DNA of 64,000 nt from contig NC_083435.1 in the NCBI RefSeq assembly GCF_020745735.1, forward strand, positions 35,632,121 through 35,696,120. The letters are read 5' to 3'. The translations under genes and the position numbers were made by a program. Shown here in pieces: positions 9,101-57,600 of this stretch. The notes beneath the pieces are model-generated. The model was not told where the DNA came from. It was given only the letters and a program-made list of their open reading frames with translations, and ran no database searches. Source of the DNA: Hemiscyllium ocellatum (lineage: Eukaryota). How positions within the stretch are numbered: position 1 is the stretch's first letter; each line of letters begins with the position of its first letter.

Positions 9101-12100
9101 AAACGGCCATTTTTGGCGCAACATCATTCTGGGATACCTTACCAGACATTACTGTCAGTGTCTCGGGCAAGCTGCGATGCTGAACCTGGCAGGAGTAGCC
9201 ACTCGGGTCATTGTTCTTGATGTCAATGAGGATCTCCATTCTGTATGTGGCATCATGGTTGGGCAGAAGCATCACTGTGAGGTCCTCTGATACTGGCTCT
9301 CCATTGTGCAGCCACGTGGCATTGATGGCACGGGGATAGAAGGCAGTGATGAGGCACAGGAGAGGTGTGGACATCTCTGCACTGGAGTTCAAACTGAAAA
9401 CCAGCACCTGGGGAGCAACTGAGGAAGAACCAGAAACCAAAGTGAAAGGCACTCTTTTTCGCAAGGTATTGCATTATTCACCGAACAGATTCCGTTCAGA
9501 ATCCCAATCTGGATCACACACCCAGAACTCGGATTTGGTTCGCAGTCAGCGTCCGGACAGATCGCACTCAGAATCCAGATCTGGATCACCTTGGACACTG
9601 GATTTAGTCACAGTCGGAAACCAGATCACACTGGGAAACTGGATTTGTATCATAATCAGAATCTGGATCACACTGGGAAGTCGGATTTGGATCATAATCA
9701 GGATTCTGATCTGGATCACACCGGGAAATCGGATTTGGATCATACTGGGAAATCGGATTTGGATCATAATCCTGATCTGGATCACACTGGGAAATCGGAT
9801 TTGGATCACAATCGGAATCCTGATCTGGAGCACATTGGGAAATCAGATTTGGATCATAATCAGGATCCTGATCTGAATCACACTGGGAAATTGGATTTGG
9901 ATCACAATCGGAATCCTGATCTGGATCACACTAGGAAATCGGATTTGGATGACAATCAGGATCCTGATCTGGATCACACTGGGAAATCGGATTTGCATCA
10001 CAATCAGGATTCTGATCTGGATCACACTGGGAAATTGGATTTGGATCATAATCAGGATTCTGATCTGGATCACACTGGGAAATCGGATTTGGATCACAAT
10101 TGGAATCCTGATCTGGATCACACTAGGAAATCGGATTTGGATGACAATCAGGATCCTGATCTGGATCACACTGGGAAATCGGATTTGCATCACAATCAGG
10201 ATTCTGATCTGGATCACACTGGGAAATTGGATTTGGATCATAATCAGGATTCTGATCTGGATCACACTGGGAAATCGGATTTGGATCACAATTGGAATCC
10301 TGATCTGGATCACACTGGGAAATCGGATTTGGATCATAATTGGAATCCTGATCTGGATCACATTGGGAAATCGGATTTGGATCATAATTGGAATCCTGGT
10401 GCGGATTACACTCAGCATCCGGCTTTGGCCAGTCTCAGTCTCTCGTCGTACTGGTCCACTTGCCTTTTCTTTGAAGGGCTGTTTTACCAGCTCGAAGTGT
10501 GGTGTAGAGTCCTTCAACACAACTGGTGTTCAGCAACTTGATAAAAGTGAGATCGTTGATGATGTCTTCAACCTGTGCGGTCAGAAAAATAAGTACACCC
10601 GTCCCCCAGCAACGCACTGTGACCATGTCACATTCAATCTCTCCAAACTCATTGATGTTTATCTTTATGAACATCCTGGTGCTTTGGCCATTTTCCAGTG
10701 TGCATCCCAGGACGCTCTGGATGTATCTGATACCTGGGAATGATCAACAAGATCAACTAGGCATTAATTACACAACTCTCCATTCACATCTGCATTGGGT
10801 GGATCCCCAGACCTCTACAGTGTATGGTAAGCAGCAATGAATGATACAGAGGTGAAGATCCCAATAAGAGGCTATGGCTGCACTATTTCTCTAGTATCTC
10901 ACCAAATGCTGAGCCACGTCCTGCTTGATCTCAGGTGGCACAGTGGCTCAATGGTTAGCACTGTGGCCGCACAGTGTCAGGGACCTGGGTTTGATTCCAG
11001 CCTTGGGGGAACTATCTGGGTGGAGTTTGCACACCTCTTCAAGCCAGCTCCACCACTCAATAAGATCATGGCCAATCTGATTTCAACCTCATCTCTATTT
11101 TCCGGCACGTCCCCCGATCCCCTTATTATTCAAGAATCTACAAACCTCTGCCTTAAAAAATATCGAATGATTCTGCATCCATTGACTTTGGTTTCCTCCC
11201 ACAATTCAACGATGTGCAGGTTAGGTGATTTGGCCATGCTAAATTACCCATAGTGTTCAGGGATGTATAGGTTAGGTCCAATAGTCAGGGAAAATGTAGG
11301 GGAGTGGGTCTGGGTAGGTTACTCTCTTCAGAGGGGCGGTGTGGACTTGTTGGGCCGAAGGGCCAGTTTCCACACTGTAGGGGTTCCATTGAGGTGCTGA
11401 GCACCTTTTATATGACATAAGAGCTGTGCAGGGCCATTATAAAACAAAAGTTAGCACTTTTAAAGACATTAGATTGGGTTGATGAAAGTTGATGAAAGGG
11501 TTGAGTTTTAAGGACTGAATGGAATGAGGCAAGCATTTTGGAGAGATGTTGCCTATGCCCTGATGTGCAGGAAGTCCTGTCTCTCATTACCACCTGAATC
11601 CCTGCAGACACACACTTACTCCTGGTCAAGCTTGATTTGAAAATCTCTCTAATGTCTTCAAATTGCCTTGGTCTGTCTCTGTAATCCCGTGTTAGAGGTA
11701 TCAACCCTCAGTTATTCCAAACCTATGAGTATGGAACAGCAATAGGTCACATGGACTTCTTCACCACTCAATAAGATCATGGCCAATCTGATTTCAACCT
11801 CTTTGGACTGTGGGAGGAAACCAGAGTGAACCCGCGCAGACACGGGGAGAACGTGCAAACTCCACACAGACAGTTGCCCGAGGCTGGAATCGAACCTGGG
11901 ACCCTGATGCTGTGAGGTGGCAGTGCTCTTAGCCACCATTCCACCCTTTCATAAGTGACAGTGTCAGATTTTCAAGCCTTGGGTCTAACCCTGGAAAATT
12001 TCTGTCAACGACTCAACACTTTACTCCCTTTCCTCTCTCAGCAGTCTAGGAGGAATCCCTCCTGGGCCTGATGGCTTTTGTGCCTGGAGTGCTATCAATG

Positions 12101-15100
12101 TTTTCACACCTTTTCTTTATCTGTCGCTATATTGCTCAACACCCACATTTCCACCCGGGCGATTTTGAGGAAGGGAATTCCAAAGACACACAACCCTCCA
12201 AGAGAAACATTTTTCCCTCATATCTGGCAAAATAGCTGACCCCTCATTTTTAAACTCTGGCTCCCTGGTGCAAGATTCAGACCTTTCTGAGCTTTCGCAT
12301 GTGTCTGATCACGACGGCTCCATATGTGATGGCAGTGCCTTCAATGGCACATGGACCCAAACTCTGGAACCCCTTCCCTCTCCTGCCCTGCCTCTCCACC
12401 TCACTTTCCTGGCTTTAAGATGCCTCTTCCAAACGACGCGTTGACGAAGGTGTGGTGACTCGGTGTCAGGTTTTGTTTGCTGTCCCCTTTTCCTGTGAAA
12501 CATGGTGGCTCAGTGGGTAGCACTGACAGCACCAGGGGCCTGGGTTCGATTCCAGCCGGGGTGGGGGTGAGTGGGGGTGACTGCCTCTGTGGTGTTTGCA
12601 CGATCACATCCCTGCCCCAACCGTGTATGTGTGGGTTCCCTCCCACAGTCCAAAGATGTGCTGGTGAAACGGATTGGCCAGGCGAAATTGCCCAGAGTGT
12701 CCAGGGATGTGCAGGCGAGGTGGGGGTTAGGCACAGGACATGTGGGGTTCTGGGAATATGTTGGGGGGGGGTGGGGGGAAGATGCTCTTTGAAGGATCAG
12801 TGCAGACTTGATGGGCTGAATGACCTGTCGGGATTCTATCAGCACCTTGGGACACTCCAATACATTAAAGACAGTTATTAGACTTTGGAATTTAATGTGG
12901 ACTTTGTGCACCTCCTCTTCAGTCTTCACACTATTTCTTGGCTGTCCTCTATGACCTTTACGCAGTTTTATGAGGTATGGTCTGCATGTACTGCACGCAA
13001 AACAAAACTTTTCATTGTACACGTGACAATAATAAATCCAATCCAATCAAATTAAAGGTGTTACACAAATACAAGTTGGCGTTGTCATTTTTCCTTTTTC
13101 AAATCTGTAACTGGAGGGGTGCGGATCCCTCTCTCACTGCCCCCCCTCCTCAGCAATGAACCCATGATCTATTCATGCCAACCGCGTTCTGTTTGAGCAG
13201 AGAGTAGGTCCAACGTGACGCACCGAACATGGTGACAAACGGAGCGATTTTCCTGAAGACATGCGTTTGGATTGTATCAGCCAGCCTGGTCTGCTCCAGC
13301 CAGTACACCTCCGGGACCCCGGCGGCCATCCACTGCTGCCTGGGTTCGGTCCGCTTGAGGGAGCTGTCATAGTACTCGGTCGGAAGGTCATCCAGCATGC
13401 CGAGCACCGAGAGATCTGGCAGCTCCGGGAGTTGGTAGTTACAGAGGAAGCGGTACTGCAAGGTGTGAGAGTCTGAGGAAAGGCCACACACAAGGATGGT
13501 GAATGAGCGAGCTCCCACGCACACCTCGCTGCCGGCCTCACCCACCCCATCTGCCTTTCACCCTCCAGGAGAAACTAACGCTCAGGCAATCGGAGCCGGA
13601 GAGGGCCATCCTGCCCATCGAGTCTATCCCCTTGTGCAACGTGGCCATGGCTGATCTGTCACCCCATCCCCATATTATCCCTCACTCCCAGTGCCTTTGA
13701 TTCCTTGACAGCTCAAAACTCTGTCTGTCCCAGGGCTCAAAGTGCATTCACACCTGTCTGGGCTAGCGAATTGCAAAACTTCACTGCCCCCTCTGAATGA
13801 GGATGTCTCTCCCCATCTCGGTCCGAAACGATCAACCTCCTTAGCCTGGTCTGTGTGTTTTACACTCCCCAGGCATGAGGAGGCACGCTCTCAGTATTAC
13901 CTTGTCAAAGTTATTTTAGAATCTTGACAGTACCTCTAATTCTTCAAAACCACAGGGAATATGGTCCCAATTGACTCAGTTGACCATAGGACATCCCTCT
14001 GGGATCATCCTTGTGATGAGGCCTACGTATGTGCCTTAGACAGGGAGACTATAGGAGCTGACTGTATTCCAGTCACGGTCTCACCAAATGCCTATAATCG
14101 TCGCTCCAGCTGAAACAGGAGAGTGAAGGGTGGCTGGGGGCTGCAGTTTGGGGGTCACAGTTCCAAATACCTGCCCCCCACCCTTCCCAAAGACGTTCAG
14201 GATGTGGGAAGAGGGACCTGTCTGGTTATTGGTTGAAATTAAACTTGAAGCCCCTGGGTGTCTGCAGAAACGCCTGGGGGTGGGTTGGGGAAGGAAGACA
14301 GAATTTGGAGTGGCCACTGCAACACCCCCCACCCCACCCTGTCACCAGCTTCCCCCAACACACAGACACACACACACACAGACACACACACAGAGACACA
14401 CACACACACACACAGACACACAGACACACACACACAAAGACATCATCCTCAAGCAAACAGGTTAAAGGCTCTCGAGACACTGTCACCCCTCCAAAAAACA
14501 GGCTGGAGGTTAGGCCCTTGGGGTGAAAGCATATTGAAGGAGCCGGCCTTGGGTGAAACCTGGAGGGCAGCTTAATGGTGCATGGGAGAGGCCTGAGTTA
14601 GAGGCCTTTGACTTGGTAGCTAGGCCTGAGTATTTGACCCAAGGCCTGTGGAATCCAGATGTGTGAATCGTGGGAGTTTAAACCTGTGAGCTTTATGACT
14701 GAGATGTCAGCGTTTCCAAACTATATTATGCTTCTTTCCCGAAACTTCCGGACATTCCGAACTGCTTTCTCGGGAACGTGAAGTGGCTTCACTGGTGTAA
14801 CATTGGGGAAAGGTAAGCAAATTCCTTGCACCAAACTCCCAAGTCAGCAGTGAGATAGAAAACAGGCCAATCATATGGAAAAGCAACAAGGCGCAGTAAA
14901 ATCACAGAGGGGTACTCTCTCATGAGACAGGCAATTGGCAGTGGTTTCACCCCAGGGTCATCAGGCCTCAGGCCGGGGATGAGATTAAGCAGAAGTGACC
15001 GCAGTAGTGGAGGGGTTTTAATGTGGTATTGCAAAGCCAGCCACTTCGTCCACTGAATGAAGCAGCCCCATGACCTGTTCTTAATATCTGGAGAAATGAA

Positions 15101-18100
15101 AGGAGCCCCTCATTTCTGCAGCGAGTCTGTTATTCAGAGCCAGCCCAGAATTGCCCAGTTAATAACGGAGTCCAATGCATACCCAGTCAACAGGAAGCAG
15201 GAGGCTGCATGACTTCAGGAGAAACAGGAGATGTAGTAAGAGACAAAAATACTACTATGTCCTGAAATATGCCAAACTCTGCTGAGGTAGCCATAAGGAC
15301 ACCACTCTCACTTCCCCATTGGTCATTACATCATTCTCCACAATACCAGCATCAGCTTGAAGAGGGGCCTGGGTCAATGACAGCAGCTTCCAGTCAGAGC
15401 TGAGGGTAATGCTGAAGGTGGAGATACAGGAAGAGCAGTGCCCTCCCTCAATAGTCAATGTCCTGTGAAAGCCAGCACCTGCCCAAGTCACCATTCCCAG
15501 TCTGTGCCCAGTATGGAGTGTATCCTGTACAATGGAAGCTGTTCACACATTTACATTACCCACAGCTGACCACCTCCCTGTGCCTTCAGTCTTCAGCAAC
15601 TCATTCCAAACTCCTCCAGTCTTAACACGTCACACTTCATTCCCCTTAATCCTGTTCATTTCACTCCTTCACCCAAACATGATTCTTCATTTCTCAGACA
15701 GGTATTCATGCTGCAGGACTGGCTCTCTGACAGGGGTCGCTTCCTCAAATACTGACCCTCTGACAGTGTGGCACTCCCACAGTACTGCTCATCTGACAGT
15801 GCGGCACTCCCTCAGTACTGACCCTCTGACAGTGTGGCACTCCCTCAGTACTGACCTTCTGACAGTGCGACAGTCTCTCAGTACTGACCCCCTGACAGTG
15901 CAGCACTCTCTCAGTACTGACCCTCTGACAGTTACGCACTCCCTCAGTACTGACCCTCTGACAGTGCGGCACTCCCTCAGTACTGACCCTCTGACAGTGC
16001 GACACTCCCTCAGTACTGACCCTCTGACAGTGCAGCACTCCCTCAGCACTGACCCTCTGACAGTGCGACACTCCCTCAGTACTGACCCTCTGACAGTGCA
16101 GCACTCCCTCAGCACTGACCCTCTGACAGTGCAGCACTCTCTCAGTACTGACCCTCTGACAGTGCAGCACTCCCTCAGCACTGACCCTCTGACAGTGCGA
16201 CACTCCCTCAGTACTGACCCTCTGACAGTGCAGCACTCCCTCAGTACTGACACTCCAACAGTGCAGCTCTCCCTCAGTACTGACCCCCTGATGATGTGGC
16301 ACTCCCTCAATACTGACCTGTGACAGTGCGGCACTCCCTCAGTACTGTCCCTCTGACAGTGCGGCACTCCCTCAGTACTGTCCCTCTGACAGTGTGACAC
16401 TCCCTTGATATTGACCCTCTGACTGTGCGGCACTCCCTCAGTATTCACCCTGTAACAGTGCGACACACGCTCTGTACTGACCCTCTAATAGAGTGGTGCT
16501 ACCTCAGTACTGACCCTCTGACAGTGCGGCACACCCTCAGTACTGATCCGCTGACAGTGTGGCACTCCCTCAGTCGTGACCCTCTGACAGTGTGCACTCC
16601 CTCAGTACTGACCCTCTGACAGTGGGTCACTCCCTCAGTACTGACCCTGTGACTGTGTGGCACTCGCTCCGTACTGACCCTCTGACAGTGCGGCACACCC
16701 TCAGTACTGACCGTGTGACAGTGCGGCACTCCCTCAGTACTGACCGTGTGACAGTGCGGCACTCCCTCAGTACTGTCTCTGACAGTGTGGCATTCTCTCA
16801 GTACTGACCTCTGACAGTGTGACACTACCTCAGTTCTGACCCTCTGACAGTTACTGTCCCTTTGACGGAGCGGCACTACTTTACTACGGACCCTTTGACA
16901 GTGTAACACTGCCTCGATACTGACCCTCCGACTGTGCGGCACTCTCTCAGTACTGACCCTCCAACAGTGCAGCACTCCATCAGTATTGACCCTCTGACAG
17001 TGCGCACTCTCTCAGTACTGGCCCTCCGACAATGCGGCACACTCTCAGTACTGACCCTTTAACAGTGTGGCTCTCCATCAGAACTGGCCGTCCGACAGTG
17101 CAGCACTCCCTCAGTACTGACGCTCCGACAGTGTGGCACTCCCTCAGTACTGACGCTCCGATAGTGTGGCACTCCCTCAGTACTGACCCTCTGACAGTGC
17201 GGCACTCCCCCAGTACTGACGCTCCAACAGTGTGGCACTCCTTCAGTACTGACCCTCTGACAGTTACGCACTCCCTCAGCACTGACCCTCTGACAGTGCG
17301 ACACTCCCTCGGTACTGATCCTCTGACAGTGCGGCACACCCTCAGTACTGACCCTCAGACAGTGCGGCACTCCCTCAGTACTGACCCTCTGACAGTGCAG
17401 CACTCCCTCAGCACTGACCCTCTGACAGTGCGACACTCCCTCAGTACTGACCCTCTGACAGTGCAGCACTCCCTCAGTATTGACCCTCTGACAGTGCGGC
17501 ACTCCCTCAGTACTGACCCTTTGACAGTTACTGTCCCTCTGACAGTGTGACGCTCCCTTGATACTGACCCTCCGACTGTGCGGCACTCCCTCAGTATTCA
17601 CCCTGTGACAGTGCGACACACGCTCTGTACTGACCCTCTAACAGAGTTGCACACCCTCAGTACTGACCCTCTGACAGTGCGGCACACCCTCAGTACTGAC
17701 GCTGTGACTGTGTGGCACTTGCTCCGTACTGACACTCCGATAGTGCAACATGCCCTCAGGACAGACCGTGTGACAGTTTAGCATTCCCTCAGTACTGACC
17801 CTCTGACTGTGCGGCAGACACTCAGTTATGACCTTCTGACAATGTGGCACTCCCTCAATACTGGCTCTTTGCAGCATTCTCTCAGTACTGACCTTCCGAC
17901 AGTGCAGCACTCCCTTAGTACTGACCCTCTGACAGTGCGGCACTCCCTCAGTACTGACCCTCAGACAGTGCGGCACTCCCTCAGTACTGACCCTCTGACA
18001 GTGTGGCACTCCCTCAGTACTGACCCTCTGACAGTGCGGCACTCCCTCAGTACTGACCCTCTGACAGTGCGGCACTCCCTCAGAAGTGACAATCTGACAG

Positions 18101-18646
18101 AGCGACACTACGTCAGTACTGACCCTCTGACAGTGCGTTACACCCTCAGTACCGACCCTCTGACTGTGCGGCACTGCGTTAGTACTGACCCTCTGACAGT
18201 ACAGCACTCCCTCAGTACTGACCCTCTGACAGTACGGCATTCCCTCAGTACTGACCCTCTGACAGTGTGGCACTCCCTCAGTACTGACCCTCTGACAGTG
18301 CGGCACTCCCTCAGTACTGACCCTCTGACTCTGTTGTGGGGTCTTGTTTGGATTTATGTGTTTGTACCTTCAGGAGCGCGGCCTTCTGTTTGGCGTAGTT
18401 GCCTGTATCTATCGTATACTTTTGCGATGAACACATGAAAGGGGAGTCAGTCTGCAGCTCATCACCCAATTTCAGACAAGGGCACAGATCCCTCCCTGTC
18501 CGTGTGGGTTAGTGCCCCCTCTCAGCACTGGCTAATGGATTCCCTCCCCAGGAATGGCCATCCTTACCAGCACATCCTCCAGCAGCAGCACAGAGAGACA
18601 GCAGAGTCAAATGGAGAAACCTTCTGTTTGTGGTCCAGCTCTCCAT
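6068..18646 (-). CDS. Gene A: divergent nonclassical MHC class I heavy chain (CD1-like candidate), join complement(6068..6153,9143..9418,10464..10733,13224..13472,18568..18646), 319 aa
   Basis: Five exons join in frame (79+249+270+276+86=960 nt) through phase-1 introns, giving the leader/alpha1/alpha2/alpha3/hydrophobic-tail layout typical of class I. Lineage not determined. Confidence 0.9.
7261..8061. mobile_element. Penelope-like element (Poseidon-type), inverted two-arm insertion
   Basis: GIY-YIG C-terminus (REFPEAWHS..NSIKKHIDLDPIY) on both strands around a junction near 7700; 11-bp direct repeat AATCTTTATAC at 7250-7260 and 8062-8072. Confidence 0.85.
8385..8720 (-). mobile_element. HE1-type SINE
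   Basis: Consensus similarity. Confidence 0.82.
9143..9418 (-). CDS. Gene A exon 4, alpha3 Ig C1-set domain (276 nt)
   Basis: Acceptor ttcctcag, donor G|gtaagg. Motifs LLCLITAFYP, W, LPNHDATY, YSCQVQH.SL. Confidence 0.95.
9600..10400. repeat. 48-bp (2x24) GATC-rich minisatellite in gene A intron 3
   Basis: Unit GATCTGGATCACACTGGGAAATCGGATTTGGATCATAATCAGGATTCT. Confidence 0.93.
10464..10733 (-). CDS. Gene A exon 3, alpha2 domain (90 codons)
   Basis: Acceptor cattcccag, donor AAG|gcaagt (GC type). GIRYIQSVLGCTLENG...KLLNTSCVEGLYTTLRAGKTALQRK contains the C101/C164-equivalent pair. Confidence 0.88.
10925..11390 (+). mobile_element. HE1-type SINE interrupted by a LINE 3' fragment
   Basis: Head 10925-11035, tail 11180-11390. 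Confidence 0.72.
11800..11945 (-). mobile_element. HE1-type SINE fragment
   Basis: Head and V domain. Confidence 0.78.
12500..12830 (+). mobile_element. HE1-type SINE (diverged)
   Basis: A/B boxes and V domain. Confidence 0.78.
13224..13472 (-). CDS. Gene A exon 2, alpha1 domain (83 codons)
   Basis: Acceptor ttcctcag, donor G|gtgcgt. Translation DSHTLQYRFLCNYQLPELPDLSVLGMLDDLPTEYYDSSLKRTEPRQQWMAAGVPEVYWLEQTRLADTIQTHVFRKIAPFVTMF has class I alpha1 motifs (SH.L.Y, G.LDD, YDS, PR..WM, YW..QT). Confidence 0.93.
14361..14436. repeat. (CA/CAGA)n microsatellite
   Basis: Visible directly. Confidence 0.9.
15742..18328 (-). repeat. 33-bp satellite array in gene A intron 1
   Basis: Reverse complement of the same unit, ~2.6 kb. 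Confidence 0.95.
18568..18646 (-). CDS. Gene A exon 1, signal peptide MESWTTNRRFLHLTLLSLCAAAGGCA
   Basis: ATG in strong context (gagaATGG), hydrophobic core, donor G|gtaagg in phase 1 matching the alpha1 exon (G+AC=Asp). A weaker in-frame ATG lies at 18685. Confidence 0.75.
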
Positions 18647-44800: not shown

Positions 44801-45565
44801 CTGTGAAATCGTAGTCATGAGAGAGCCACCCGGTTCATGAATGCCCCATCGGGGAGGGAAACTATCACCTTTACCCAGTCTTGCCCGCACGTGACTCCAG
44901 ACCCACAGCAAGGACTCGACTACCCTCTCGATAATCAGGGATGGACAACAAATGCTGGGAACGAACGGACAGTGTCTTGGGAAAGTGAACATCTCCCCGG
45001 GCTGCCACCTCCCAGAGTGAGAATACAACTCCCGAGTTTCTGGATCACCATCCCACTCTCATCCTGATGATCCATGTTCCCAGTCTATTACATTCCCTTT
45101 CCTTTCCCCACATCCCGACCATTCCTCACCCAGAGGCACGACTCATCCCGGCTTTCTCTCACTCTCTTGTGCCGATTGCGGAATCCGGATTTGACTCCCG
45201 TTTCTGGTGCTGGGTAATCAGTTATCCCTCCTCCCATTCCCCCCCCCTCCCCCAGTGTATTCCTATTCGGAGTCTGTGGGTCAGTCCCATCTCTTACCCC
45301 ATGTTATCTTCAGTGGTGCCGGCAGGCTGCTGTGATCAATATGGCACTCGTGATTCCGGTTATCCCCGGGCTCGATCTGGAAAGTTACCCGAATTTGGTA
45401 GGTGCCATCGTGGTTGGGTAGAATGCCTGTGCTGTGGGTTCCGGAGACTGGCACTCCGTCTGCAAACCAGGTCACATTGATCGATCGTGGGTAAAAGCCA
45501 GTGACCAGGCAGTGGAGGTTGACATTCTGCCCATTTGTGTGGTAGACATTTGTCTCAGGGACAAC

Positions 45566-45628
<63 letters not shown>

Positions 45629-48600
45629 GTCACTTTAACTGTAATGGCTCCCTTGGACTCCCTTTACTTTCCCATTTTTCCAGTAATTTTGGTGAAATAA
45701 GGAGTACAGACTCAGGGATCAGTCTGCGTGGGAATCTCAACCACGTCCCGTCCTCTTGGCAAATCAGTCCATTGAGCACCGGAGCGCCTCGCCGCCCTCA
45801 GTACTGCCCTCACCTTGCTGCGGTTCAGCAGATTAACTGTGGCCCACTCACTCACAGCTCTGGGAAATTCATGCTCCTCAGCGACACAGAAGGAGAGCAG
45901 CGTTCGATGAGGAAGATGATAAAAAATGGAGATGGCCTTGAGAGAAACCGGAGTCAATCCCGGTGAAGAGTGCTATGGGCTGTGCACTGCACACTGACCC
46001 GTTTATTGTGTTCTGTGCCCTGCGTACTGTGCTGTGTACAGTGCCCCGTCCCTTGTGTACAGTGCCCCGTGCCCTGCGTACTGTGCTGTGTACAGTGCCC
46101 CGTCCCTTGTGTACTGTGATGTGTACGGTGCCCTGTGCCCTGCGTGTTGTGCTGTGTACAGTGCCCCGTGCCCTGCATGCTGTGATGCGTACAATGCCCT
46201 GTGCCTTGCGTACTGTGACGTGTACAGTGTCCTTTCCCTTGTGTACTGTGCTGTGTACAGTGCCCTGTGCCCTGCTTACTATGCTGTGTATAAATCCTGT
46301 GCCCTGCATGCTGTGCTGTGTACAGTACCCTGTGCCCTGCGTACTGTGCTGTGTAGTGCCCCGTGCCCCGCGTGATGTGATGTGTACAGTGCCCCGTGCC
46401 CAGCGTGCTGTGCTGTGTACAGTGCCCCTTGCCTTGTGTACTATGCTGTGTACAGTGCCCCGTCCCTTGTGTACTGTGATGTGTACAGTGCCCTGTGCCC
46501 TGCATGCTGTGATGCGTACAATGCCCTGTGCCTTGCGTACTGTGACGTGTACAGTGTCCTTTCCCTTGTGTACTGTGCTGTGTACAGTACCCTGTGCCCT
46601 GCGTACTGTGCTGTGTAGTGCCCCGTGCCCCGCGTGATGTGATGTGTACAGTGCCCCGTGCCCAGCGTGCTGTGCTGTGTACAGTGCCCCTTGCCTTGTG
46701 TACTATGCTGTGTACAGTGCCCCGTCCCTTGTGTACTGTGATGTGTACAGTGCCCTGTGCCCTGCGTGCTGTGCTGTGTACAGTGCCCCGTGCACTGTGA
46801 TGTGTACAGTGCCCCGTGCCCTGTGTACTGTGATGTGTACAGTGCCCTGTGTACTGTGCTGTGTACAGTGCCCCGTGCCCTGCGTGCTGTGCTGTGTACA
46901 GTGCCCCGTGCCCTGCATACTGTGCTGTGTACAGTGCCCCGTGCCCTGCGTGCTGTGCCCTGTACAGTGCCCTGTGTACTGTGCTGTGTACAGTGCCCTG
47001 TGCCCTGCATGATGTGCTGTGTACAGTGCCCCGTGCCCTGCGTGTTGTGCTGTGTACAGTGCCCCGTGCCCTGCGTGTTGTGCTGTGTACAGTGCCCCGT
47101 GCCCTGCGTGATGTGCTGTGTACAGTGCCCCGTGCCTTGTGTACTGTGCTGTGTACAGTGCCCCGCGCCTTGTGTACTGTGCTGTGTACAGTGCCCCATG
47201 TCTTGTGTACTGTGCTGTGTACAGTGCTCTGTGCCTTGTGTACTGTGATGTGTACAGTGCCCCGTGCCCTGTGTGCTGTGCTGTGTACAGTGCCCCGTGC
47301 TGTGTACAGTACCCCGTGCCTTGTGTACTGTGTTGTGTACAGTGTCCCTTGCCTTGTGTACTGTGCTGTGTACAGTGCACCGTGCCTTGTGTACTGTGCT
47401 GCGTTCAGTGCCGCGTGCCTTGTGTACTGTGCTGTGTACAGTGCACCGTGCCCTGTGTGCTGTGCTGTGTACAGTGCCCCATGCCTTGTGTACTGTGCTG
47501 TGTACAGTGCCCTGTGCCCAGGGTGCTGTGCTGTGTACAGTGCCCCGTGCCCTGCGTGCTGTGCTGTGTACAGTGCCCCTTGCCTTGTGTACTGTGCTGC
47601 GTACAGTGCCCCGTGCCTTGTGTACTGTGCTGTGTACAGTGCACCGTGCCCTGTGTGCTGTGCTGTGTACAGTGCCCCATGCGTTGTGTACTGTGCTGTG
47701 TACAGTTTCCCGTGCCTTGTGTACTGTGCTGTGTACAGTGCCCCCTGCCCTGCGTGCTGTGCTGTGTACAGTGCCCCGTGCCTTGTGTACTATGCTGTGA
47801 GCTGTGACCACACTTCCTGTGCTCTGTGCCGACTGTTTTGTAGTTTGCGTTGTATTGAACTGTACGTGCCCTGTACGTTTGCTGTGGGTCCCTTGCGTTC
47901 CCTGCACTCTTTGCCTTGTGGATGTTGTATTGATCCAATGCCTGGGTCATCTCCGCAGTGAGTGTGCCACACAGGACAGCCATTTCAGTGCATTTGACGT
48001 TGAGCTTGTGACAGCAATGTTAGGGTCTGACCTACCTTTGCGGTTCAGGAATGCCTGACCATAACCATGATACGTGTTTAACCAATCGACGCAAATTCTC
48101 TTTGTGTACTGTTTCTTGTACTCGTTGTCATCCTTGTTACTGTTCCACTTGTTCTGGGTCGACACCGCGTACGGCGAGGCAGCAACCCAGAGACTGTGAT
48201 CCAGGTCGAAGCTGATCAGCTCTTGCCCGTTGAAGGCGTACTGCCGTTTTCCAGTGACAGTCCCATCCTCCAGTACCTCGCAGCCTGAGGTGTACTGCAG
48301 GTAGTTCAAACCTAAATACAACCAGAACCCAACAAACGTCAGCTTAAACCCAGCCTCTGCATTACCTGTGATCACACCTTCAACTCTAAATCGATATTCA
48401 AATGCAAGCCTGTCATCGAATCACAGAGTCCCGACAGTGTGGAAACAGGCCCTTCGGCCCGACAAGTGCACCCCGAACAGGATTCCACCCGAACCCATTC
48501 CCCATTCCTCCACATTTTCCTCTGACGAATGCACATCCCTGAACACGACAGGCAATTTAGCGTATCCAATTCACCCTAACCTGCACATCTTTGTCTGTGG

Positions 48601-51600
48601 GAAGAAATCAGAGCATCCAGAGGGAGCCCACGCAGATGTAGGGAGAATGTCTGTGTGGAGTTTGCACAATCACCTGAGGCTGGAATCGAACCCGGGTCCC
48701 TGTTGGGGCTGTGAGGCAGTGGTGCTAACCACTGAGCCACCATGCCACCCTGCATTCACATGACAGTGAGAATATAAAACAGTACAACGCAGGAACAAGC
48801 CCTTCCTCCCACCATGTCTGTACAGACTGTGAGGGCCAGCAATTGTATATGTTAACCGCTGTGCCCCATGAGCGCCAACAGGGCAGTATGGTGGCACTGT
48901 GTTTAGCACTGCTGCCTCACAGCGCCAGTGACCCAGGTTTGATTCCAGCCCAAAGACCTGCAGGTTAGATAAATTGGCCGTACTAAATTGTCTTGTCGTA
49001 TCCATGGTTACACACACTGGGTAGATTAGCATGGTAAATGCAGGGTTATGGGGATGGGAAGGGTCTGGGGAAAGATGCCCTTCATAGGGTTGGTACCATT
49101 CAAAACTAACCCCACACCCATGTTCACATTCCATATCCCTCAATTCCCTGCCCGTTTGTGTGTCTGTCTTAACGCTTAAATATTGCTGTTGTATTTGCTT
49201 CTATGACCTCTCCTGGCAGTGTGTTCCAGGCACGTACAACCCTCTGCATGAAAAGACGAACCTCATACACTTATCTCCTCTCACCTTAAACCTGTGCCCC
49301 TTACTACTTGACATTTTCACCATGTCAAACAGACCACAACTACCCACCCTATCCGTGCCTCTCATCGTGTTACACACATCTATCAGATGGCCCCTCAGCC
49401 TCTAATGCTCTCACAAAGACAACCCAAGTTTGTCCAACCTCTCCTGAGAACAAATACACTGCAATCCAGGCAACACCTTGATAAACCTCTTTTGTATACC
49501 CGCTCCAAAGCCTCCATTACTTTCCTGTAGTGTGGTCACCAGAACTGTATGCAATACTCCAAGTGTGGCCAAACCAAAGACTTAAACAGCTGCAACATGA
49601 CTTGCCCAACTTTTATACTCAATGCCCTGACAGATGAGAACGAGCATGCCATACACCTTCTTTACCAGGTTATCGACTTGTGTTGCCGTCTTCAGGGAGC
49701 TAAGGACTTGCACCCCCAAGGTTCCCACAATGCTCCTAAGTTTGTATTGTACACTTTCCTCTCGCAGTTGACCTCCTAAGATGCATCACCTCACACTTGC
49801 CCGGACTAAACCCCATCTGCCAATTCTCTGTCCAACTTTCCTAATGATTTATATGCAACTGTATCTTTTGACAATCTTCCTCAATATCCACACTTCCATT
49901 TTGAGTCATCTGCAAACTTACTAATCAGACCACCTACCTTTCAGCCAATATTATCCAACAGAGGTCCCAACACCCATCCTTGCACAGCACCACTCTTCAC
50001 AGACCTACAGTCAGAACAATGTTCCATAGCTACTCTGTCTACTATGGCCAAAGCAATTTTGCATCTGATTTGCCAACGCACTATGGATCCCAAGAGACAT
50101 AATCTTCTGGACCATCATTCTAGGACATGTCTGATCTTGGCCAGTACCTGAGTGAAGTCCATACAGACAATGTGCACTACCCTGGCCTCAATAGTTATCT
50201 TTGTCACTTCCTTGAAACTTCAATTGAATTTGTGAGATAAAGACAATTGTGCCCAAAGCCATGCTAACTATCTCAAACAATATCCATTCCTTTCCAAATG
50301 TGAAGACATCCTAACGTTTGGAATCTTCTCCAACATTTTCCCGATCACTGATGTAAAGTTCAGCAGCCTCGAATTTCCCTTTGCCCTCCTTCAACAAAAG
50401 AACAACACTGACTCTTCCCCATCTTCTGGGACCTCGCCTGTGGCTAAAGAGGATTCAGAGATCTCTGTCAAGGCCCCGGCAATCTCCCCACTTGCCTCCT
50501 TCAGTATCCTGAGATAGATCCCATCAGGCCCTGGGAACCTATCCAAGTTGATGTCTTTCAACACCGCCTCCTTCTTAATATTGACATGACCCAGAATTTC
50601 AACCACCTCATATAGCCCTCCTTAATCTTCCCATCATGCATATCCTTCTCCCGGGTGAATACTGATGAATAGTACACATTAAGGACCTCACCCATTTACT
50701 CCTTGCATAAATTCCTCTTTGTCTCTGAATGAACTTGACCTTTCTCTGGTTAACCATGTGCTGCTCATGTATCTATAAAATGTCTTGGCATTCTCCTTAT
50801 TCCTACTTACGGCCCCTTCTAACCCTCCAAATCTCTTGTTGAAGCTCTTTCCTGCTTCCTTTATATTCCTAAACCTTAGATTCCTAGATTCCCTACAGTG
50901 TGGAAACAGGCCCTTCGGCCCAGCAAGTCCACACCGAGCCTCCAAACAGTAACCCACCCAGTCCCATTTCCCTCGGACTCATGTACCTAACACAATGGGC
51001 AATTTAGCATGGATTGGATTGTGGGAGGAAACCGGAGCACCCGGAGGAAACCCACGCAGACACGGGGAGAATGTGCAAACTCCACACAGACAGTCGCCCG
51101 AGGCTGGAATTGAACCTGGGACCCTGCTGCTGTGAGGTAGCAGTGCTAACCACTGAGCCACCGTGCTGCCCCAAAACCTTACATATGCTTCTTTTTCTTT
51201 TTTGACTAAACTCTGAATATCTCTTGTCATCCAGGGTTCCTGAATCTTGTTGTCCTTGTCTTCCATTGTCACAGGGAGAAACTGCTCCTGGCCTTTGGTC
51301 AACTGGCCTTTAAAAGGTTCCCTCATTTCAAATAGGAATTTACCCTCTAAACAGCCACACCCAATCTCATTTCTCCAGTTCCTGCTGAATACTGTTGTAA
51401 TCAGCCTCCCCCAATATATTTCGTCTGAGGACCAGTTTTACCCTTAACTATCGTCAAACTTGTGGAATTACAATTACTGTTCCCGAAACGTGCCACCACT
51501 GAAAATGTGATCACTTGCGCAGGCTCATTCCCCGATAAGTAATCGAGTGCAGCCCTTCCCTAGTGGGGACTATCTACATTTCAGGAAACCTGCCTGGGTG

Positions 51601-54600
51601 TACAGAACCAATGTACAGGAGCCAAAGAGAACTCCCGCAGCGTGCCCCAATGACTGCTGCCCTGAAGCTCTTCAACCATGTTCTGAAACAGACTCGCTAC
51701 CACAGCCCTCCAACCTTCCAGCTCAGCACTGTCCCCATGACGTGTCCTACCTGCCTATCTTCCTTCCCATCTTTCCACTCCACCCACCTCTCTGACCTAT
51801 CACCTTCATCCCCACCCCCATTCATCCATTGTACTCTTTGCTACCTTCCCCCACCCTCCTCTCTGACCTATCACCTTCATCCCCACCCCCATTCACCTCT
51901 TGTACTCTTTGCTACTTTCTCCCCACCCCCACCCCCACCCCCCTCTCACTTATCTCTCCACTCTGCAGGCACCCTGCCTCTATTCCTGATGAAGGGCTTT
52001 TGCCCGAAATGTCAATTTTCCTGCTCCTCGGATGCTGCCTGACTTGCTGTCCTTTTCCAGCACCACTCTAATCAAGACTGCTACCTGATGGACTCTGACC
52101 TCCAGTATTATGAAGTGCTTTGAGAGGTTAGTTATGCTTCACATCAACTCCAACTGCTTGCATGATTTGCAATTCACTGACCAGTGCAATTGGTCCACAG
52201 CAGATGTCAATTCCTCGGTGCTACACTCAGCCCAGGAACATTGGAAAACAAGGATACCTATATCTGGCTCCGACTTATTGACTACAGTTCCACCTTCAAC
52301 ACAACAATTCCAAACAACCTCATCTCTGAACTCGGTGACCTAGATCTTGGCTCCCTGCTCTGTAACTGGATCCTCCCCTCCCTGACGCATAGACCACAGT
52401 CAGTACGAATAGGCCAGAACACCTCTTCCAGCCTAATCCTCAATGCTGATGCCCCACAAGGCTGCATACTTAGCCCCCTTCAAAACTCCTTATACACTCA
52501 CAACTGTGTAGACAAATTCTGACCCAAATCGATTCACAAATTTGTTGATGACCCCATCATCGTGGGTCGGATTTGAAACAATGGCGAGACAGAATACAGG
52601 AAAGAGGTTGAGTGCTTACAGCATGGTGTAAAGACAATAATGTCTTCATCGACATCAGCAAAATGAAGGGGCTGAATGTGGTCATTGACTCCAGGAAGCA
52701 GAGTCATAGCACTCCCCCTGTCTGCATCAATGGTGCTGAGGTGGAGGTGGTCGACAGCATCATGTTCCCTGGAGGCGATGGTCACCAATGACCTGTCCGA
52801 TTCCACCCATGTTGATGCTATGGTCAAGGAAGCACAACAATGTCTCTACTTGCTGAGGAGACTAAGGATATTTGGCAAGTCCACAAGGACTCTAACCAAT
52901 TTTGATAGATGTCCCGTAGAAAGCATCTTATCTGGGTGCATCATAGTCTAGTGCTGCGATTGCTCTGCCCAAGAAACTACAGTCATGAACACAGCCCAGT
53001 CCATCACACAAAGCAGCCTCCCATCCACTGACTTCCTCTACACTTTTTGCTGCTGAGGGAAAGCAATCAACAACAAAGACCCGTTCCACCCTCTTCCATC
53101 ACGCAGAAGTTATCAAAATTTGAATACCGATACGAAGATATTCAAGAACAGCTTCACCCACGCTGTTATCACACTTTTGAATGGACCTCTCAAATACTAA
53201 TTCTGATCCCTCTCTCTCTCTCTCTCTCTCTGCAGCTGTAACACTATATCGTGCACTCTACTCTGCGACCTTGGGGGACTTCGTATGGTACGATCTGCCA
53301 GTACAGAATGCAACACAACACTTTTCACTGCATCTCAATAAACCAATCAATCAAATTTGTCCCATCCAGCCCCTAAGTCACCACGGATCCCAAACAACTT
53401 AATCTTCTGGACCAGCCTACCATGTCTGACCTTATCAAATACGTATTCTATGCAGACAACCTCCATTACCCTAACCTGAACAATCATCTTTGTCTCTTCC
53501 TCAAAAGACCCAATTGAATTTATGAGATAAGACCGCTGTCAAAGATAAAATCACTCACCTTAGCAACTGTGCTGTTTTCTTTTAAAACATCTTTCAATGA
53601 CCTGCTTACACAGCAGGTTCCTGTACCACCCACTGGCTATTGGGAGGCCGACACGATAACCCCATCAGAGTGACTGGAGCTTTCAGCTACCTGAGTTCTA
53701 CCCTCCCATCCTCACTGGATAAACTCTCCAAGATGTCCTCTCGCAGTACAGCTGCACTTCCTCCTTAATCAGTAATGCAACATTGAAACTCTGGAACGCT
53801 GAGCTGTCAGTCCTGCCCTTCTCTGAACCAAGCTTCTGGAATGACTGTAACATCACAGCACCATGTACTAACCCAGGCTCGAAGCTCAGAACCTTACCTG
53901 CTATACTCAGGATTGTGCTAGAACTATATTACAGACCACCCTGAGGGCCTTGGTCCAACACTAACAGGAATACATATTCCCCATTACAGACCACCCTGAG
54001 GGCCTGGGTCACACACTAATAGGAGTACATATTCCCCATTACAGACCTCCCTGAGGGCCTGGGTCACACACTAACAGGAGTACATATTCCCCATTACAGA
54101 CCACCCTGAGGGCCTGGGTCACATATTAACAGGAGTACATATTCCCCATTACAGACCTCCCTGAGGGCCTGGGTCACACACTAACAGGAGTACATATTCC
54201 CCATTACAGACAACCTGAGGACCTGGGTCACACATTAACAGGAGTACATATTCCCCATTACAGACCACCCTGAGGGCCTGGGTCACACACTAACAGGAGT
54301 ACATATTCCCCATTACAGACCACCCTGAGGATCGCTGTGGGTCACACACTAACAACAGTGTACGTATTCACCGTTAAGGATTTCTTGTAGCCTCGGTTTC
54401 TCAGTAACATGAAAGTGTGTTCAGCATTACAAATTTCCTGCAGCCTGGGTGACACCATAACGCAAGAGTACATCTGTCCATCCCAGCCCTCCTGTGAACC
54501 AGGTCCACTCTCTAACACTAGTATACATTCACCGTTGCAGCCTTCCTAGGAACCTGGGTCACACTCTAACATGAGAGTTTGTTCACCCTTGTACGCTGTG

Positions 54601-57600
54601 AAGTCAGATCACTCTGTAACCCACGTGCGCACTAACCTTGTTTACTGCTGTTTGTTCTCTGTTGTGCTATCTCCACATTGGCGAGGGACAGACGCTGTCG
54701 GTCAATCAGCCTCTGTGTCTCCTGTTCCCAATATTGATCCTTCAGTGATGTCCGCATCCACGGCTGCCGAGGGATATCCTTCTTGATCACACTGTCAAAG
54801 TAGGTTATCTGGACATCATCCAAAACTCCAACATGAATGAATTCAGGAAAGTCATTGCTGTTCAGCATTGAGATGTAGTAATACCTCAGGGAGTGTGATT
54901 CTGTCAAAGATAAAAACCAAATCTGTCTCAGGGAAGACAATAAAACCATATGACAAAGGAGCAGAGGTGGTCTACTCAGCCCATCGTGTCGGCTTCAATG
55001 ACATCATGGCTGATGTGCTGGACTGCAACTCCTCTTCCCTACCGTTTGCCCCATAACACTTGATTCCTGACTGATTTGAAATCCTCGGCCTTGAAATTCC
55101 ATAACAAACCAGCCTCTACATTTATTTGTGATAAAGAATTTCACCGATTCACCACCCTCAGAGGAAAAGGACTTCCTCAATTCTGTCTTAATCGTGCAAG
55201 CCCTTACTCTGAGGTTTTTCCCTCTGGCCCTGGACCTTCCCACAAGGGGAGCAACCTTTTGGAGCTCAGGTTGAGGTTCTGGACCTTCCAAACCCAGTAT
55301 GGTGACCAAACGAACATTGCAGCTCAGCAAGCAAACTTACAACCGGGGAACAACCTTACCGCATCTCCCCGGTCAAATCCCTTTGATGTTTCAGTAAGAT
55401 CAGCTCTCATTCTCCGACAGTGCAATGAGGCCCAAATTATTCAACCTCTCCTCATAACTCAGTCCCTTCATTCCTGTCACCAGCCTAGTGAACATTCTCC
55501 GGTCTGCCTCCAATGCTCATACATCTATCCTTACAAAAGAGGCGCAAAACGTTTCACAGTATTCCAGGTGTGACCTGACCAATGCCTTACATAGTTTCAT
55601 CAAAACCTCCCTAATTTTATATGCCATTCCCTGTGACATAGACACCAACATTCCATTTGCTTTCTCTAATACCTGCTGAACTTACATGCCAGTTTTTTTT
55701 GTGATTTAAACAGAGACTCTCGTATTCCTCTGTGCTGTAGTTTTCTGCAGTCTTTCTCCATTTAAATAATATTCAGCTCCCCAGTTCTCCTGCCAAAGTG
55801 AATTACTTCATATTTTCCCACAATATATTCCATTGGCCATGTTTTGCCCACTCACTTGTTTATATCTCTTACTGACGTTTTGTATCAGCGTTAGCACTTG
55901 TCTTCCCACTGATTTTTGTGTAATCCATCAACTTGGCTAAAGTAACTCATCCAAGTTATTGACACATATCATATATATTTGTGGCCCCAGCACAATCCCT
56001 GGTGCCCTCCACCCAGGCTGCCATCTTGATAATACCCTCTCTAAGCCCAACTCTCTGTCTTCTATTAGTTAACCAATCCTATATGTATGCAAAAGTATTG
56101 CCTCCAACCACAGGAATACTTCACTTATTACATAGCTTAGCAAGTATTACTTAATCAAGTGCCTTCTGAAAATCTAAGTATATTACATCTACTGTTTCCC
56201 TTTTATCTATCCTGCTTGTTACTTCTTCAAAGAATTTGTCAGGCATGTTTTCCCCTTCATGAAGCTTTACTGACTCTGTTCATGTATATTATGTGATTCT
56301 AAATTTCCTGCCGTTACATCCTTTTAAAGAGACTTGAATGTTCCCCCATATCAGATATTAAGTTAACTGGCCTATAAATACCTGTCTTTTTCCTATCTTT
56401 CCTTATTAAATAGAGGTCAGAGAAAGTGGGGACTGTAAATACTGGAGAGTCAGATTCAAAAAGTGTGGTGCTGGAAAAGCACAGCAGGTCAGGCAGCATC
56501 CAAGGAGCAAGAGAGTCGACATTTCGGGCATAAGCCCTTCATTAGAACATTCCTGATGAAGGGCATATAGCCAAAAGGTCGAGTCTCCTGCTCCTCGGAT
56601 TCTGCCTGACCTGCTGCGCTTTTCCAGCACCACGCTTTTCAACTTCCTAAATAGACATGTTTGACAGTCTTCCAATCTGCTGGGGTTTTTCCAGGATCGA
56701 ACTAGTCCTGGAAGATTCCAGCCAGTGCATCTACTATCTCTACAGCTACTTCCTTTAGTATCCTGAGACACCTCCCATCAGGTCCATGGGACTTAATAGT
56801 TTTTAAACCCCATCAGTTTCCTCTGTTGAAAGGTATTTACGTCCTCTCCTCCTTTTGTCTCTTAATTATGTTGCAATTTTGGAATGTTATTAGCATCATG
56901 TACTGTTGAGATTATTGGAAAGTAATTATTCAGCTCTCTGCCATTTCCTGGTTCTCCAGTGTTAGTTTCCCAGCGTTTCCCTAGGAACCTGCGTTTCCTC
57001 TCTCTGCCTTTTCAGATATTTAAATAAGCTCTTGCTGACTGCAATCTTATTACTTTCAAGTTTCCCTCAAGTTTTAACTTTTCCCCTTCATTAATTTCTT
57101 GGTCTTTTTTCATTGGTTTGGAAGGTGTTCCCAATTCTCTGTCTTGCTACTAATTTTTGCCACATTTACTTTAAACTTATCTTTAATTGGGCGATCTCCT
57201 TAACCTCCCTGATTAACCATTGCTGGCTCATGCTCCTTTTAAAGTCCCCTTCTACTCCAGGGGATGTACCGTATATACTCGAGTATAAGTCAATTCTTTT
57301 TAAGGTTAAATTTATGGGGTCGACTATTATCTGGATACCACTTTTATGGGGCTGAAATTCATGCCGGTCAAAATCCATACCATATCATTGGCAGACGCCC
57401 AACTGATCTCTAAACAAATAAAGAAACAAAAACTACGATTATGGTAATTCTGAACACCCGGAGTGGAGCAAGCCAAGTGGCACACTGACTCATAAATGCT
57501 GATTAGATTACTTACAACATGGCCCCTCGACCCAACAAGTCCACACCGGCCTGTCGAAGCACACTCACCTAACACTACAGGCAATTTAGCAATGTCCAAT

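Follow-up and report, generated by a model that had tools for sequence, protein, structure and literature searches.

Two papers (PMC10751288; PMC12562908) present UFA, a nonclassical MHC class I lineage of sharks, as a CD1-like molecule that binds lipid, and its nurse-shark (Ginglymostoma cirratum) member has a solved structure (PDB code 8GM8, 'Crystal structure of shark nonclassical MHC CLASS I, UFA'). Lipid binding by UFA and by UGA (9CH4), a second shark class Ib lineage reported to be CD1-like, is attributed in the literature to crystal structure and mass spectrometry. One account places lipids comparable to the CD1d type in the groove of both (PMC12562908, citing a personal communication) and another mentions UFA lipid binding as unpublished data (PMC10751288); our literature search for a primary UFA paper found these two secondary mentions only. 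As reported, UFA resembles CD1 of mammals, birds and reptiles in having no peptide anchors and a hydrophobic groove said to hold lipid (PMC12562908), and whether the two are orthologous was left undecided by PMC10751288. UFA is single or low copy within the MHC class Ib cluster (PMC10751288, PMC12562908), to which it maps together with UDA and UEA (PMC10751288). We compare with these systems a 64,000-nucleotide stretch of the Hemiscyllium ocellatum genome (the window; positions below are counted from its first letter), in which a sequence-only reading had proposed a lipid-presenting class I gene with a CD1-like α2 domain (gene A), lying in tandem with a peptide-type class I gene (gene B).

Gene A and the UFA lineage

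Gene A is very probably this shark's UFA orthologue, an MHC-linked nonclassical class I gene with a likely hydrophobic or lipid ligand. Nurse-shark UFA (8GM8) is the best PDB match for α1 (E 3.3e-29) and α3 (E 2.2e-46) and the sole significant one for α2 (E 7.1e-27), with 67.7% identity across α1–α3; identity to the Chiloscyllium punctatum orthologue (P0005) reaches 88.7% over 319 amino acids. A maximum-likelihood tree built without named UAA, UBA, UCA, UDA and UEA references joins gene A to C. punctatum (support 100/99), then to nurse-shark UFA (99/100), and sets both within a strongly supported shark-and-ray UFA family of 26 rows (100/99) on a long stem, with gene B and teleost U-type rows outside it. 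The caveat of the sequence-only reading, that gene A may belong to the named UFA lineage, was thus well placed, and its suggestion of novelty falls: the lineage is already named, its structure is solved and gene A is not new.

Hallmarks of gene A recur across the family. A 5-residue deletion at the end of α1 is common to 26/26 rows, the α2 peptide-anchor columns are replaced throughout, and an extra α2 Cys pair (ECD...RCW in gene A) is found in 21/26 and 20/26 rows. UFA occurs throughout the elasmobranchs as an MHC-linked class Ib heavy chain encoded in one or few copies. The nurse-shark protein shares with gene A its lineage, the α1-end deletion, the anchor loss, the extra Cys pair and the α2/α3 exon junction, but has NPR where gene A has an NTS sequon ahead of C164, and its helices are slightly less hydrophobic. 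The host of gene A is a different animal, an orectolobiform close to Chiloscyllium; at the nucleotide level its exons are 94.9% identical to those of C. punctatum.

The positions and minus strand given for three gene A exons in the sequence-only reading are exact, and we add a leader exon and a C-terminal exon (Table 1). Gene A thus has five exons, encoding leader, α1, α2, α3 and a hydrophobic C terminus. The α1, α2 and α3 exons are each phase 1 with AG acceptors, and gene A shares its exon plan and phases with classical class I, along with the C101–C164 disulfide, Y7, Y59 and a C1-set α3.

Table 1. Exons of genes A and B and tandem repeats in the window
Feature	Position	Strand	Description
Gene A exon 1	18568..18646	-	ATG and signal peptide MESWTTNRRFLHLTLLSLCAAAGGCA; donor G|gtaagg, phase 1; tblastn with C. 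punctatum orthologue P0005
Gene A α1 exon	13224..13472	-	249 nt, 83 codons
Gene A α2 exon	10464..10733	-	270 nt; donor is GC (AAAG|gcaagt)
Gene A α3 exon	9143..9418	-	276 nt, Ig C1-set domain
Gene A last coding exon	6068..6153	-	GVGRVSHSIWPGPALCLFTMLAMAVGAV then TAG; hydrophobic C terminus, no cytoplasmic tail
48-bp minisatellite	9732..10412		about 14 copies; gene A α2–α3 intron; Tandem Repeats Finder, 89% matches
33/66-bp minisatellite	15714..18329		about 80 copies of 33 bp; gene A intron 1
Gene B, upstream tandem neighbour	45298..54900	-	α1 54900-54637, α2 48311-48036, α3 45564-45298

Groove, fold and C terminus of gene A

Among the classical anchors Y7, Y59, Y/R84, T143, K146, W147, Y159 and Y171, gene A retains only Y7 (in SHTLQY) and Y59 (in VYW). 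The losses listed in the sequence-only reading are borne out by alignment to gene B: the 5-residue deletion at the end of α1 (...HVFRKIAPFVTMF) takes out the R84/N86 region with its sequon, K146 and W147 are absent, and Y159, W167 and Y171 have become L, G and T. Gene B keeps Y7, Y59, R84, the N86 sequon, T143, K146, W147, Y159, W167 and Y171; relative to it and to shark UAA (6LUP), every one of these from R84 onward is replaced or deleted in gene A. The reading was also right that gene A α1 and α2 are 5 and 2 codons shorter than their counterparts, because the exons measure 249 nt (83 codons) and 270 nt against 264 nt (88 codons) and 276 nt in gene B. From W133 to C164 there are 30 residues in gene A and 33 in gene B, the canonical span being 32.

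The helices proved hydrophobic, as had been claimed. The α1 helix of gene A is 48% hydrophobic (GRAVY +0.21) against 26% (-1.34) in gene B, and the α2 helix 47% (+0.41) against 23% (-1.42), so that aliphatic helices stand where classical class I has polar and charged ones. This hydrophobicity is consistent with lipid in the groove. The NTS sequon that the reading placed before C164 is present.

The AlphaFold model built for C. punctatum UFA (88.7% identical to gene A; mean pLDDT 78) matches the solved nurse-shark UFA structure by Foldseek, and UFA, classical class I, UGA, MR1, HFE and FcRn make up its neighbours among the best 50 in PDB and best 30 in Swiss-Prot. From this model we infer a normal class I fold for the gene A protein, which would pair with β2-microglobulin because its α3 is a C1-set domain (Pfam E 1.4e-13). 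The residues with which classical class I clamps the peptide termini are replaced in gene A, and the end of the α1 helix and the α2 helix are aliphatic; a lipid or another hydrophobic molecule would for these reasons be the most likely ligand, shown to T cells or to another receptor, a reading that draws on orthology and on the two secondary literature statements.

The protein ends ...AMAVGAV, with 0 cytoplasmic residues, so a tyrosine sorting motif of the CD1 type cannot be used. In CD1b, c and d, the YXXZ endosomal sorting motif lies in the cytoplasmic tail. The gene A product may instead be a tail-less membrane protein or be GPI-anchored, to judge from its sequence. Most full-length shark and ray UFA models terminate as gene A does, with a cluster of small residues (SGVG or GGVG), a short polar spacer and a hydrophobic stretch of about 15 residues before the end; a signal for GPI attachment is classically laid out in this way. 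We tentatively suggest, at somewhat under even confidence, that UFA is GPI-anchored, or at least tail-less, across sharks and rays. In that case, the most ancient CD1-like lipid binder known would get to its lipids without the tyrosine-motif endosomal route of CD1b, c and d.

Intactness and alternative functions

Some features of gene A would suit a decaying pseudogene whose α2 domain evolves neutrally: the non-canonical GC donor of the α2 exon, the TAG immediately after the hydrophobic segment, and an α2 dN/dS against C. punctatum of 1.15. C. punctatum DNA (contig L002) has the identical GC donor and the same TAG at the corresponding codon, so neither is a defect; the K|V exon junction also matches the nurse-shark UFA protein and NCBI's C. 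punctatum model, and most full-length orthologues stop at the same place. The joined coding sequence is in frame over 957 coding nucleotides (319 amino acids), with 0 frameshifts and 0 internal stops, and dN/dS is 0.475 overall, 0.32 in α1 and 0.33 in α3. The α2 value stems from 12 nonsynonymous and 3 synonymous differences; with counts this small it may reflect diversifying selection or relaxed constraint, or simply be noise. A run of 150 million letters from the same organism, guessed to be RNA (X1), contains 0.88 of the words of the α2 exon but only 0.17 of those from a 4330-bp stretch of gene A in which the exon share is 0.18; these shares look like those of a transcript, an indirect sign of expression. 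We reject decay, a highly improbable reading, because the donor and stop are conserved in C. punctatum and dN/dS in α1 and α3 is below 1. Gene A is an intact UFA copy that is probably expressed.

A UFA-lineage protein could also hold a hydrophobic ligand for some purpose other than presentation, or hold none, as in EPCR, ZAG, HFE and FcRn. HFE, MR1, ZAG and FcRn rank beside classical class I in our fold and profile searches, the gene A protein has no cytoplasmic tail, and no UFA-restricted T cell is known, all of which lend this account some weight. We nevertheless hold it unlikely: published descriptions place CD1d-comparable lipids in the groove (PMC12562908), gene A sits in the MHC class Ib cluster, and α2 changes faster than α1 and α3 between close species, in the manner of surfaces that face a ligand or receptor. 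An intact UFA gene with a hydrophobic or lipid ligand remains the preferred interpretation.

Relation to CD1 and the MHC neighbourhood

The proposed resemblance of the α2 end to CD1 was reproduced by no search, whether with Pfam, PDB or a UFA profile. The α2 exon drew no CD1 chain from PDB at E<=10. A UFA α1–α2 profile found UGA, classical class I, MR1 and ZAG but no CD1 among the best 60 PDB matches listed, UGA (9CH4) being second best among them (8.8e-25); UGA is a separate gene and shares only about 27% identity with the model of C. punctatum UFA. Foldseek with that model likewise gave no CD1 in the best 50 PDB or best 30 Swiss-Prot neighbours, where classical class I, HFE and MR1 took the first ranks. 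Pfam did not assign gene A to the CD1 family MHC_I_3: the α2 exon has no match, and α1 matches MHC_I only, at E 2e-4, under the cut-off. CD1 homology is not supported as an account of gene A, the PDB, profile, Pfam and Foldseek searches having yielded no CD1-specific signal. Gene A shows no detectable specific similarity to CD1 in sequence or fold and has neither its tail nor its tyrosine sorting motif, and the likeness of UFA to CD1 is functional, with homology limited, as far as detected, to shared class I ancestry. The main claim of the sequence-only reading, a non-peptide class I molecule for a hydrophobic ligand, MHC-linked and in tandem with a gene that keeps its peptide anchors, accords with all our results; the specific CD1 sequence resemblance is not supported.

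UFA and UGA are the evidence for placing lipid-type class I molecules in the first jawed vertebrates, alongside the classical class I and the class II ones, and therefore bear on the origin of CD1. To this the window adds a complete genomic UFA copy, with its exon map, conserved GC–AG intron and conserved tail-less end, and a local map; its worth lies in annotation and synteny detail rather than in discovery.

One contig (C113) carries every one of the genome's 83 PF00129 matches, and the window stands at the edge of a multicopy class I cluster there (35.2–37.8 Mb), which fits the published mapping of UFA (PMC10751288); UFA coordinates were not found in the supplement of that paper. A PF00969 search of the same genome for MHC class II linkage gave no match, and the controls were equally silent. 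The α2 exon of gene A has one match in the 3.98-Gb genome and is thus single copy. Gene A lies in the MHC chromosome's class Ib cluster. So do gene B, which is 26 kb upstream of it, and a UGA orthologue at a distance of about 0.39 Mb, which shares its contig and strand. Gene B is of the peptide type, its best PDB matches being classical class I (shark UAA 6LUP and chicken BF2), and its α2 is single copy, the next genome match being 41% identical; its lineage might, as a guess, be UDA.

Exon structure and lineage of gene A

Gene A, the class I heavy-chain gene under study, has three phase-1 exons with AG acceptors within 9143–13472, as a sequence-only reading had proposed. Adding the leader and last coding exons gives 957 coding nucleotides (319 residues), with 0 stops and 0 frameshifts. 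Three donors are GT, and that of alpha2 is a GC (AAAG/gcaagt, 10458–10464), the sole position preserving frame into alpha3. Two intronic minisatellites occur, at 9732–10412 (48-bp unit, about 14 copies) and 15714–18329 (33-bp unit, about 80 copies).

Gene A exons and other class I features of Hemiscyllium ocellatum (window positions, or positions on C113, the contig holding the window)
Feature	Position	Strand	Basis or remark
Gene A leader exon	18646–18568	minus	ATG ... G/gtaagg; guided by closest full-length relative
Gene A alpha1 exon	13472–13224	minus	249 nt, phase 1, AG acceptor; sequence read
Gene A alpha2 exon	10733–10464	minus	270 nt, phase 1, AG acceptor; sequence read
Gene A alpha3 exon	9418–9143	minus	276 nt, phase 1, AG acceptor; sequence read
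Gene A last coding exon	6153–6068	minus	TAG straight after hydrophobic segment; guided by closest full-length relative
Gene B	45298–54900	minus	26 kb upstream of gene A, same strand
UGA orthologue (L005)	C113:35246086–35251267	minus	alpha1 matches 9CH4, E 4.2e-29
Second, more divergent UGA-like alpha1 (L007)	C113:35301976–35302155		9CH4, E 4.2e-14

Against all PDB sequences, each exon alone finds 8GM8_A as its best chain (E 3.3e-29 for alpha1, 7.1e-27 for alpha2 and 2.2e-46 for alpha3), and for alpha2 this is the only significant match. The Foldseek PDB table titles 8GM8 "Crystal structure of shark nonclassical MHC CLASS I, UFA" (released 2024-11-27) and words 9CH4 identically for UGA (released 2026-03-18). 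Pfam assigns alpha3 to C1-set and alpha1 to MHC_I at sub-threshold level only, and a Pfam search of alpha2 gave no match. About 30 relatives in large protein libraries come without exception from sharks and rays, under automatic names that vary (HFE homolog, MR1-like, CD1d-like). Gene A is 88.7% identical to its Chiloscyllium punctatum orthologue (P0005) over all 319 residues and 67.7% identical to nurse-shark UFA. In a maximum-likelihood tree (LG+C20+F+G4), gene A pairs with C. punctatum (support 100/99) and nurse-shark UFA joins them (99/100) inside a 26-row UFA family (100/99) on a long stem, whose branching roughly follows elasmobranch orders, with rays as a supported group; gene B, the neighbouring class I gene, and teleost U-type genes fall outside. 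A 5-residue alpha1 deletion is common to all 26 family rows, an extra alpha2 cysteine pair is present in 21/26 and 20/26, and the anchor columns are replaced across the alignment. These matches, identities, tree and shared characters identify gene A as the UFA orthologue in an orectolobiform shark close to Chiloscyllium, bearing out the earlier caveat that it might belong to this named lineage. The observation is confirmed; the lineage already has a name and a solved structure, so novelty is low.

Groove, fold and comparison with CD1

The groove features described from sequence hold throughout. Alpha1 has 83 codons versus 88 in gene B, and alpha2 90 versus 92; Y7 and Y59 are both present, the deletion at the alpha1 end takes out the R84/N86 region, and alpha2 is without K146 and W147, with L at Y159, G at W167 and T at Y171. 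The hydrophobic helices are measurable: from Y59 to the alpha1 end, gene A is 48% hydrophobic (GRAVY +0.21) versus 26% (−1.34) in gene B, and the alpha2 helices are 47% (+0.41) versus 23% (−1.42). Gene A shows a class I domain architecture with peptide clamps lost, aliphatic helices and no cytoplasmic tail. An AlphaFold model of the 88.7% identical C. punctatum orthologue (mean pLDDT 78) has normal alpha1 and alpha2 helices above a sheet and matches 8GM8 with a TM of 0.90 (normalized by target length); judging from this model, gene A would adopt the class I fold.

One claim fell: the proposed likeness of LLNTSC...GK..LQR to CD1. With the alpha2 exon, no CD1 chain was found among PDB sequences at E ≤ 10. 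A profile of 25 UFA alpha1–alpha2 regions run against PDB placed UFA first and UGA second (8.8e-25), followed by classical class I molecules of fish and frog, MR1, shark UAA and ZAG, with no CD1 among the best 60 matches listed; Foldseek of the orthologue model against PDB and Swiss-Prot ranked classical class I, HFE, MR1 and FcRn. The motif is non-specific, since sequence, profile and fold searches favour other class I molecules, and the NTS sequon before C164 is not universal in the UFA family (NPR in nurse shark). The likeness of gene A to CD1 is functional only: its product would be a putative beta2m-associated lipid binder, most likely displayed to T cells, a proposal in agreement with reports on the UFA lineage.

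C terminus and integrity of the gene

The tail-end layout is conserved throughout the UFA family: a cluster of small residues, SGVG or in rays GGVG, is followed by a 7–10-residue spacer and a closing hydrophobic segment of about 15 residues, with the stop right behind this segment in most full-length shark and ray models. This order resembles a GPI attachment signal and may act as one; the alternative is a tail-less transmembrane anchor. Whether GPI or transmembrane, gene A differs from CD1b, c and d in having neither cytoplasmic tail nor YXXZ motif.

Decay of gene A, as the GC donor and early stop might suggest, was rejected, both features being conserved in C. punctatum: the gene on its contig L002 has the identical donor (AAAAG/GCAAGT) and identical end (GCGGTGTAG; last exon at L002:9188–9277). 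Between the two species exons are 94.9% identical in nucleotides (dS 0.09) and introns 87–93%. The dN/dS ratio is 0.475 overall, 0.32 in alpha1, 0.33 in alpha3 and 1.15 in alpha2, where 12 nonsynonymous versus 3 synonymous changes (against L002:4617–4886) are too few for firm interpretation. Several differences lie in the alpha2 helix (I/T, Q/E, V/F, N/K, L/F). A 150-million-letter run from this species, conjectured to be RNA, contains 0.88 of the words sampled from the alpha2 exon but only 0.17 of those from the 4330 bp of 9143–13472, in which exons make up a share of 0.18. As DNA, the run would amount to about 0.04-fold of a 4-Gb genome; the word shares therefore fit a gene A transcript.

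Genomic setting

The alpha2 exon is present once in the 3.98-Gb assembly. All PF00129 (Pfam MHC_I) matches in the genome (83/83) lie on C113 between 24 and 46 Mb, clustered near 24.1, 26.5–26.9, 28.6–28.8, 35.2–37.8 and 44.9–46.5 Mb, and the window (35.63–35.70 Mb) adjoins the dense multicopy cluster at 35.2–37.8 Mb. Every elasmobranch class I gene is MHC-linked, and UFA maps to the class Ib cluster that also holds UDA and UEA (PMC10751288), a picture that the C113 arrangement matches. The proposed MHC-linked tandem with an anchor-keeping class I gene likewise stands, gene B lying 26 kb upstream on the contig that carries all MHC_I matches. A UGA orthologue is about 0.39 Mb from gene A, so this genome has UFA and UGA in close linkage. 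Gene B retains every peptide anchor and is most like classical class I (shark UAA, chicken BF2). It occurs once in the genome, where the next best match is 41% identical, and may be UDA. A long minisatellite occupies its alpha2–alpha3 intron (about 45880–47900).
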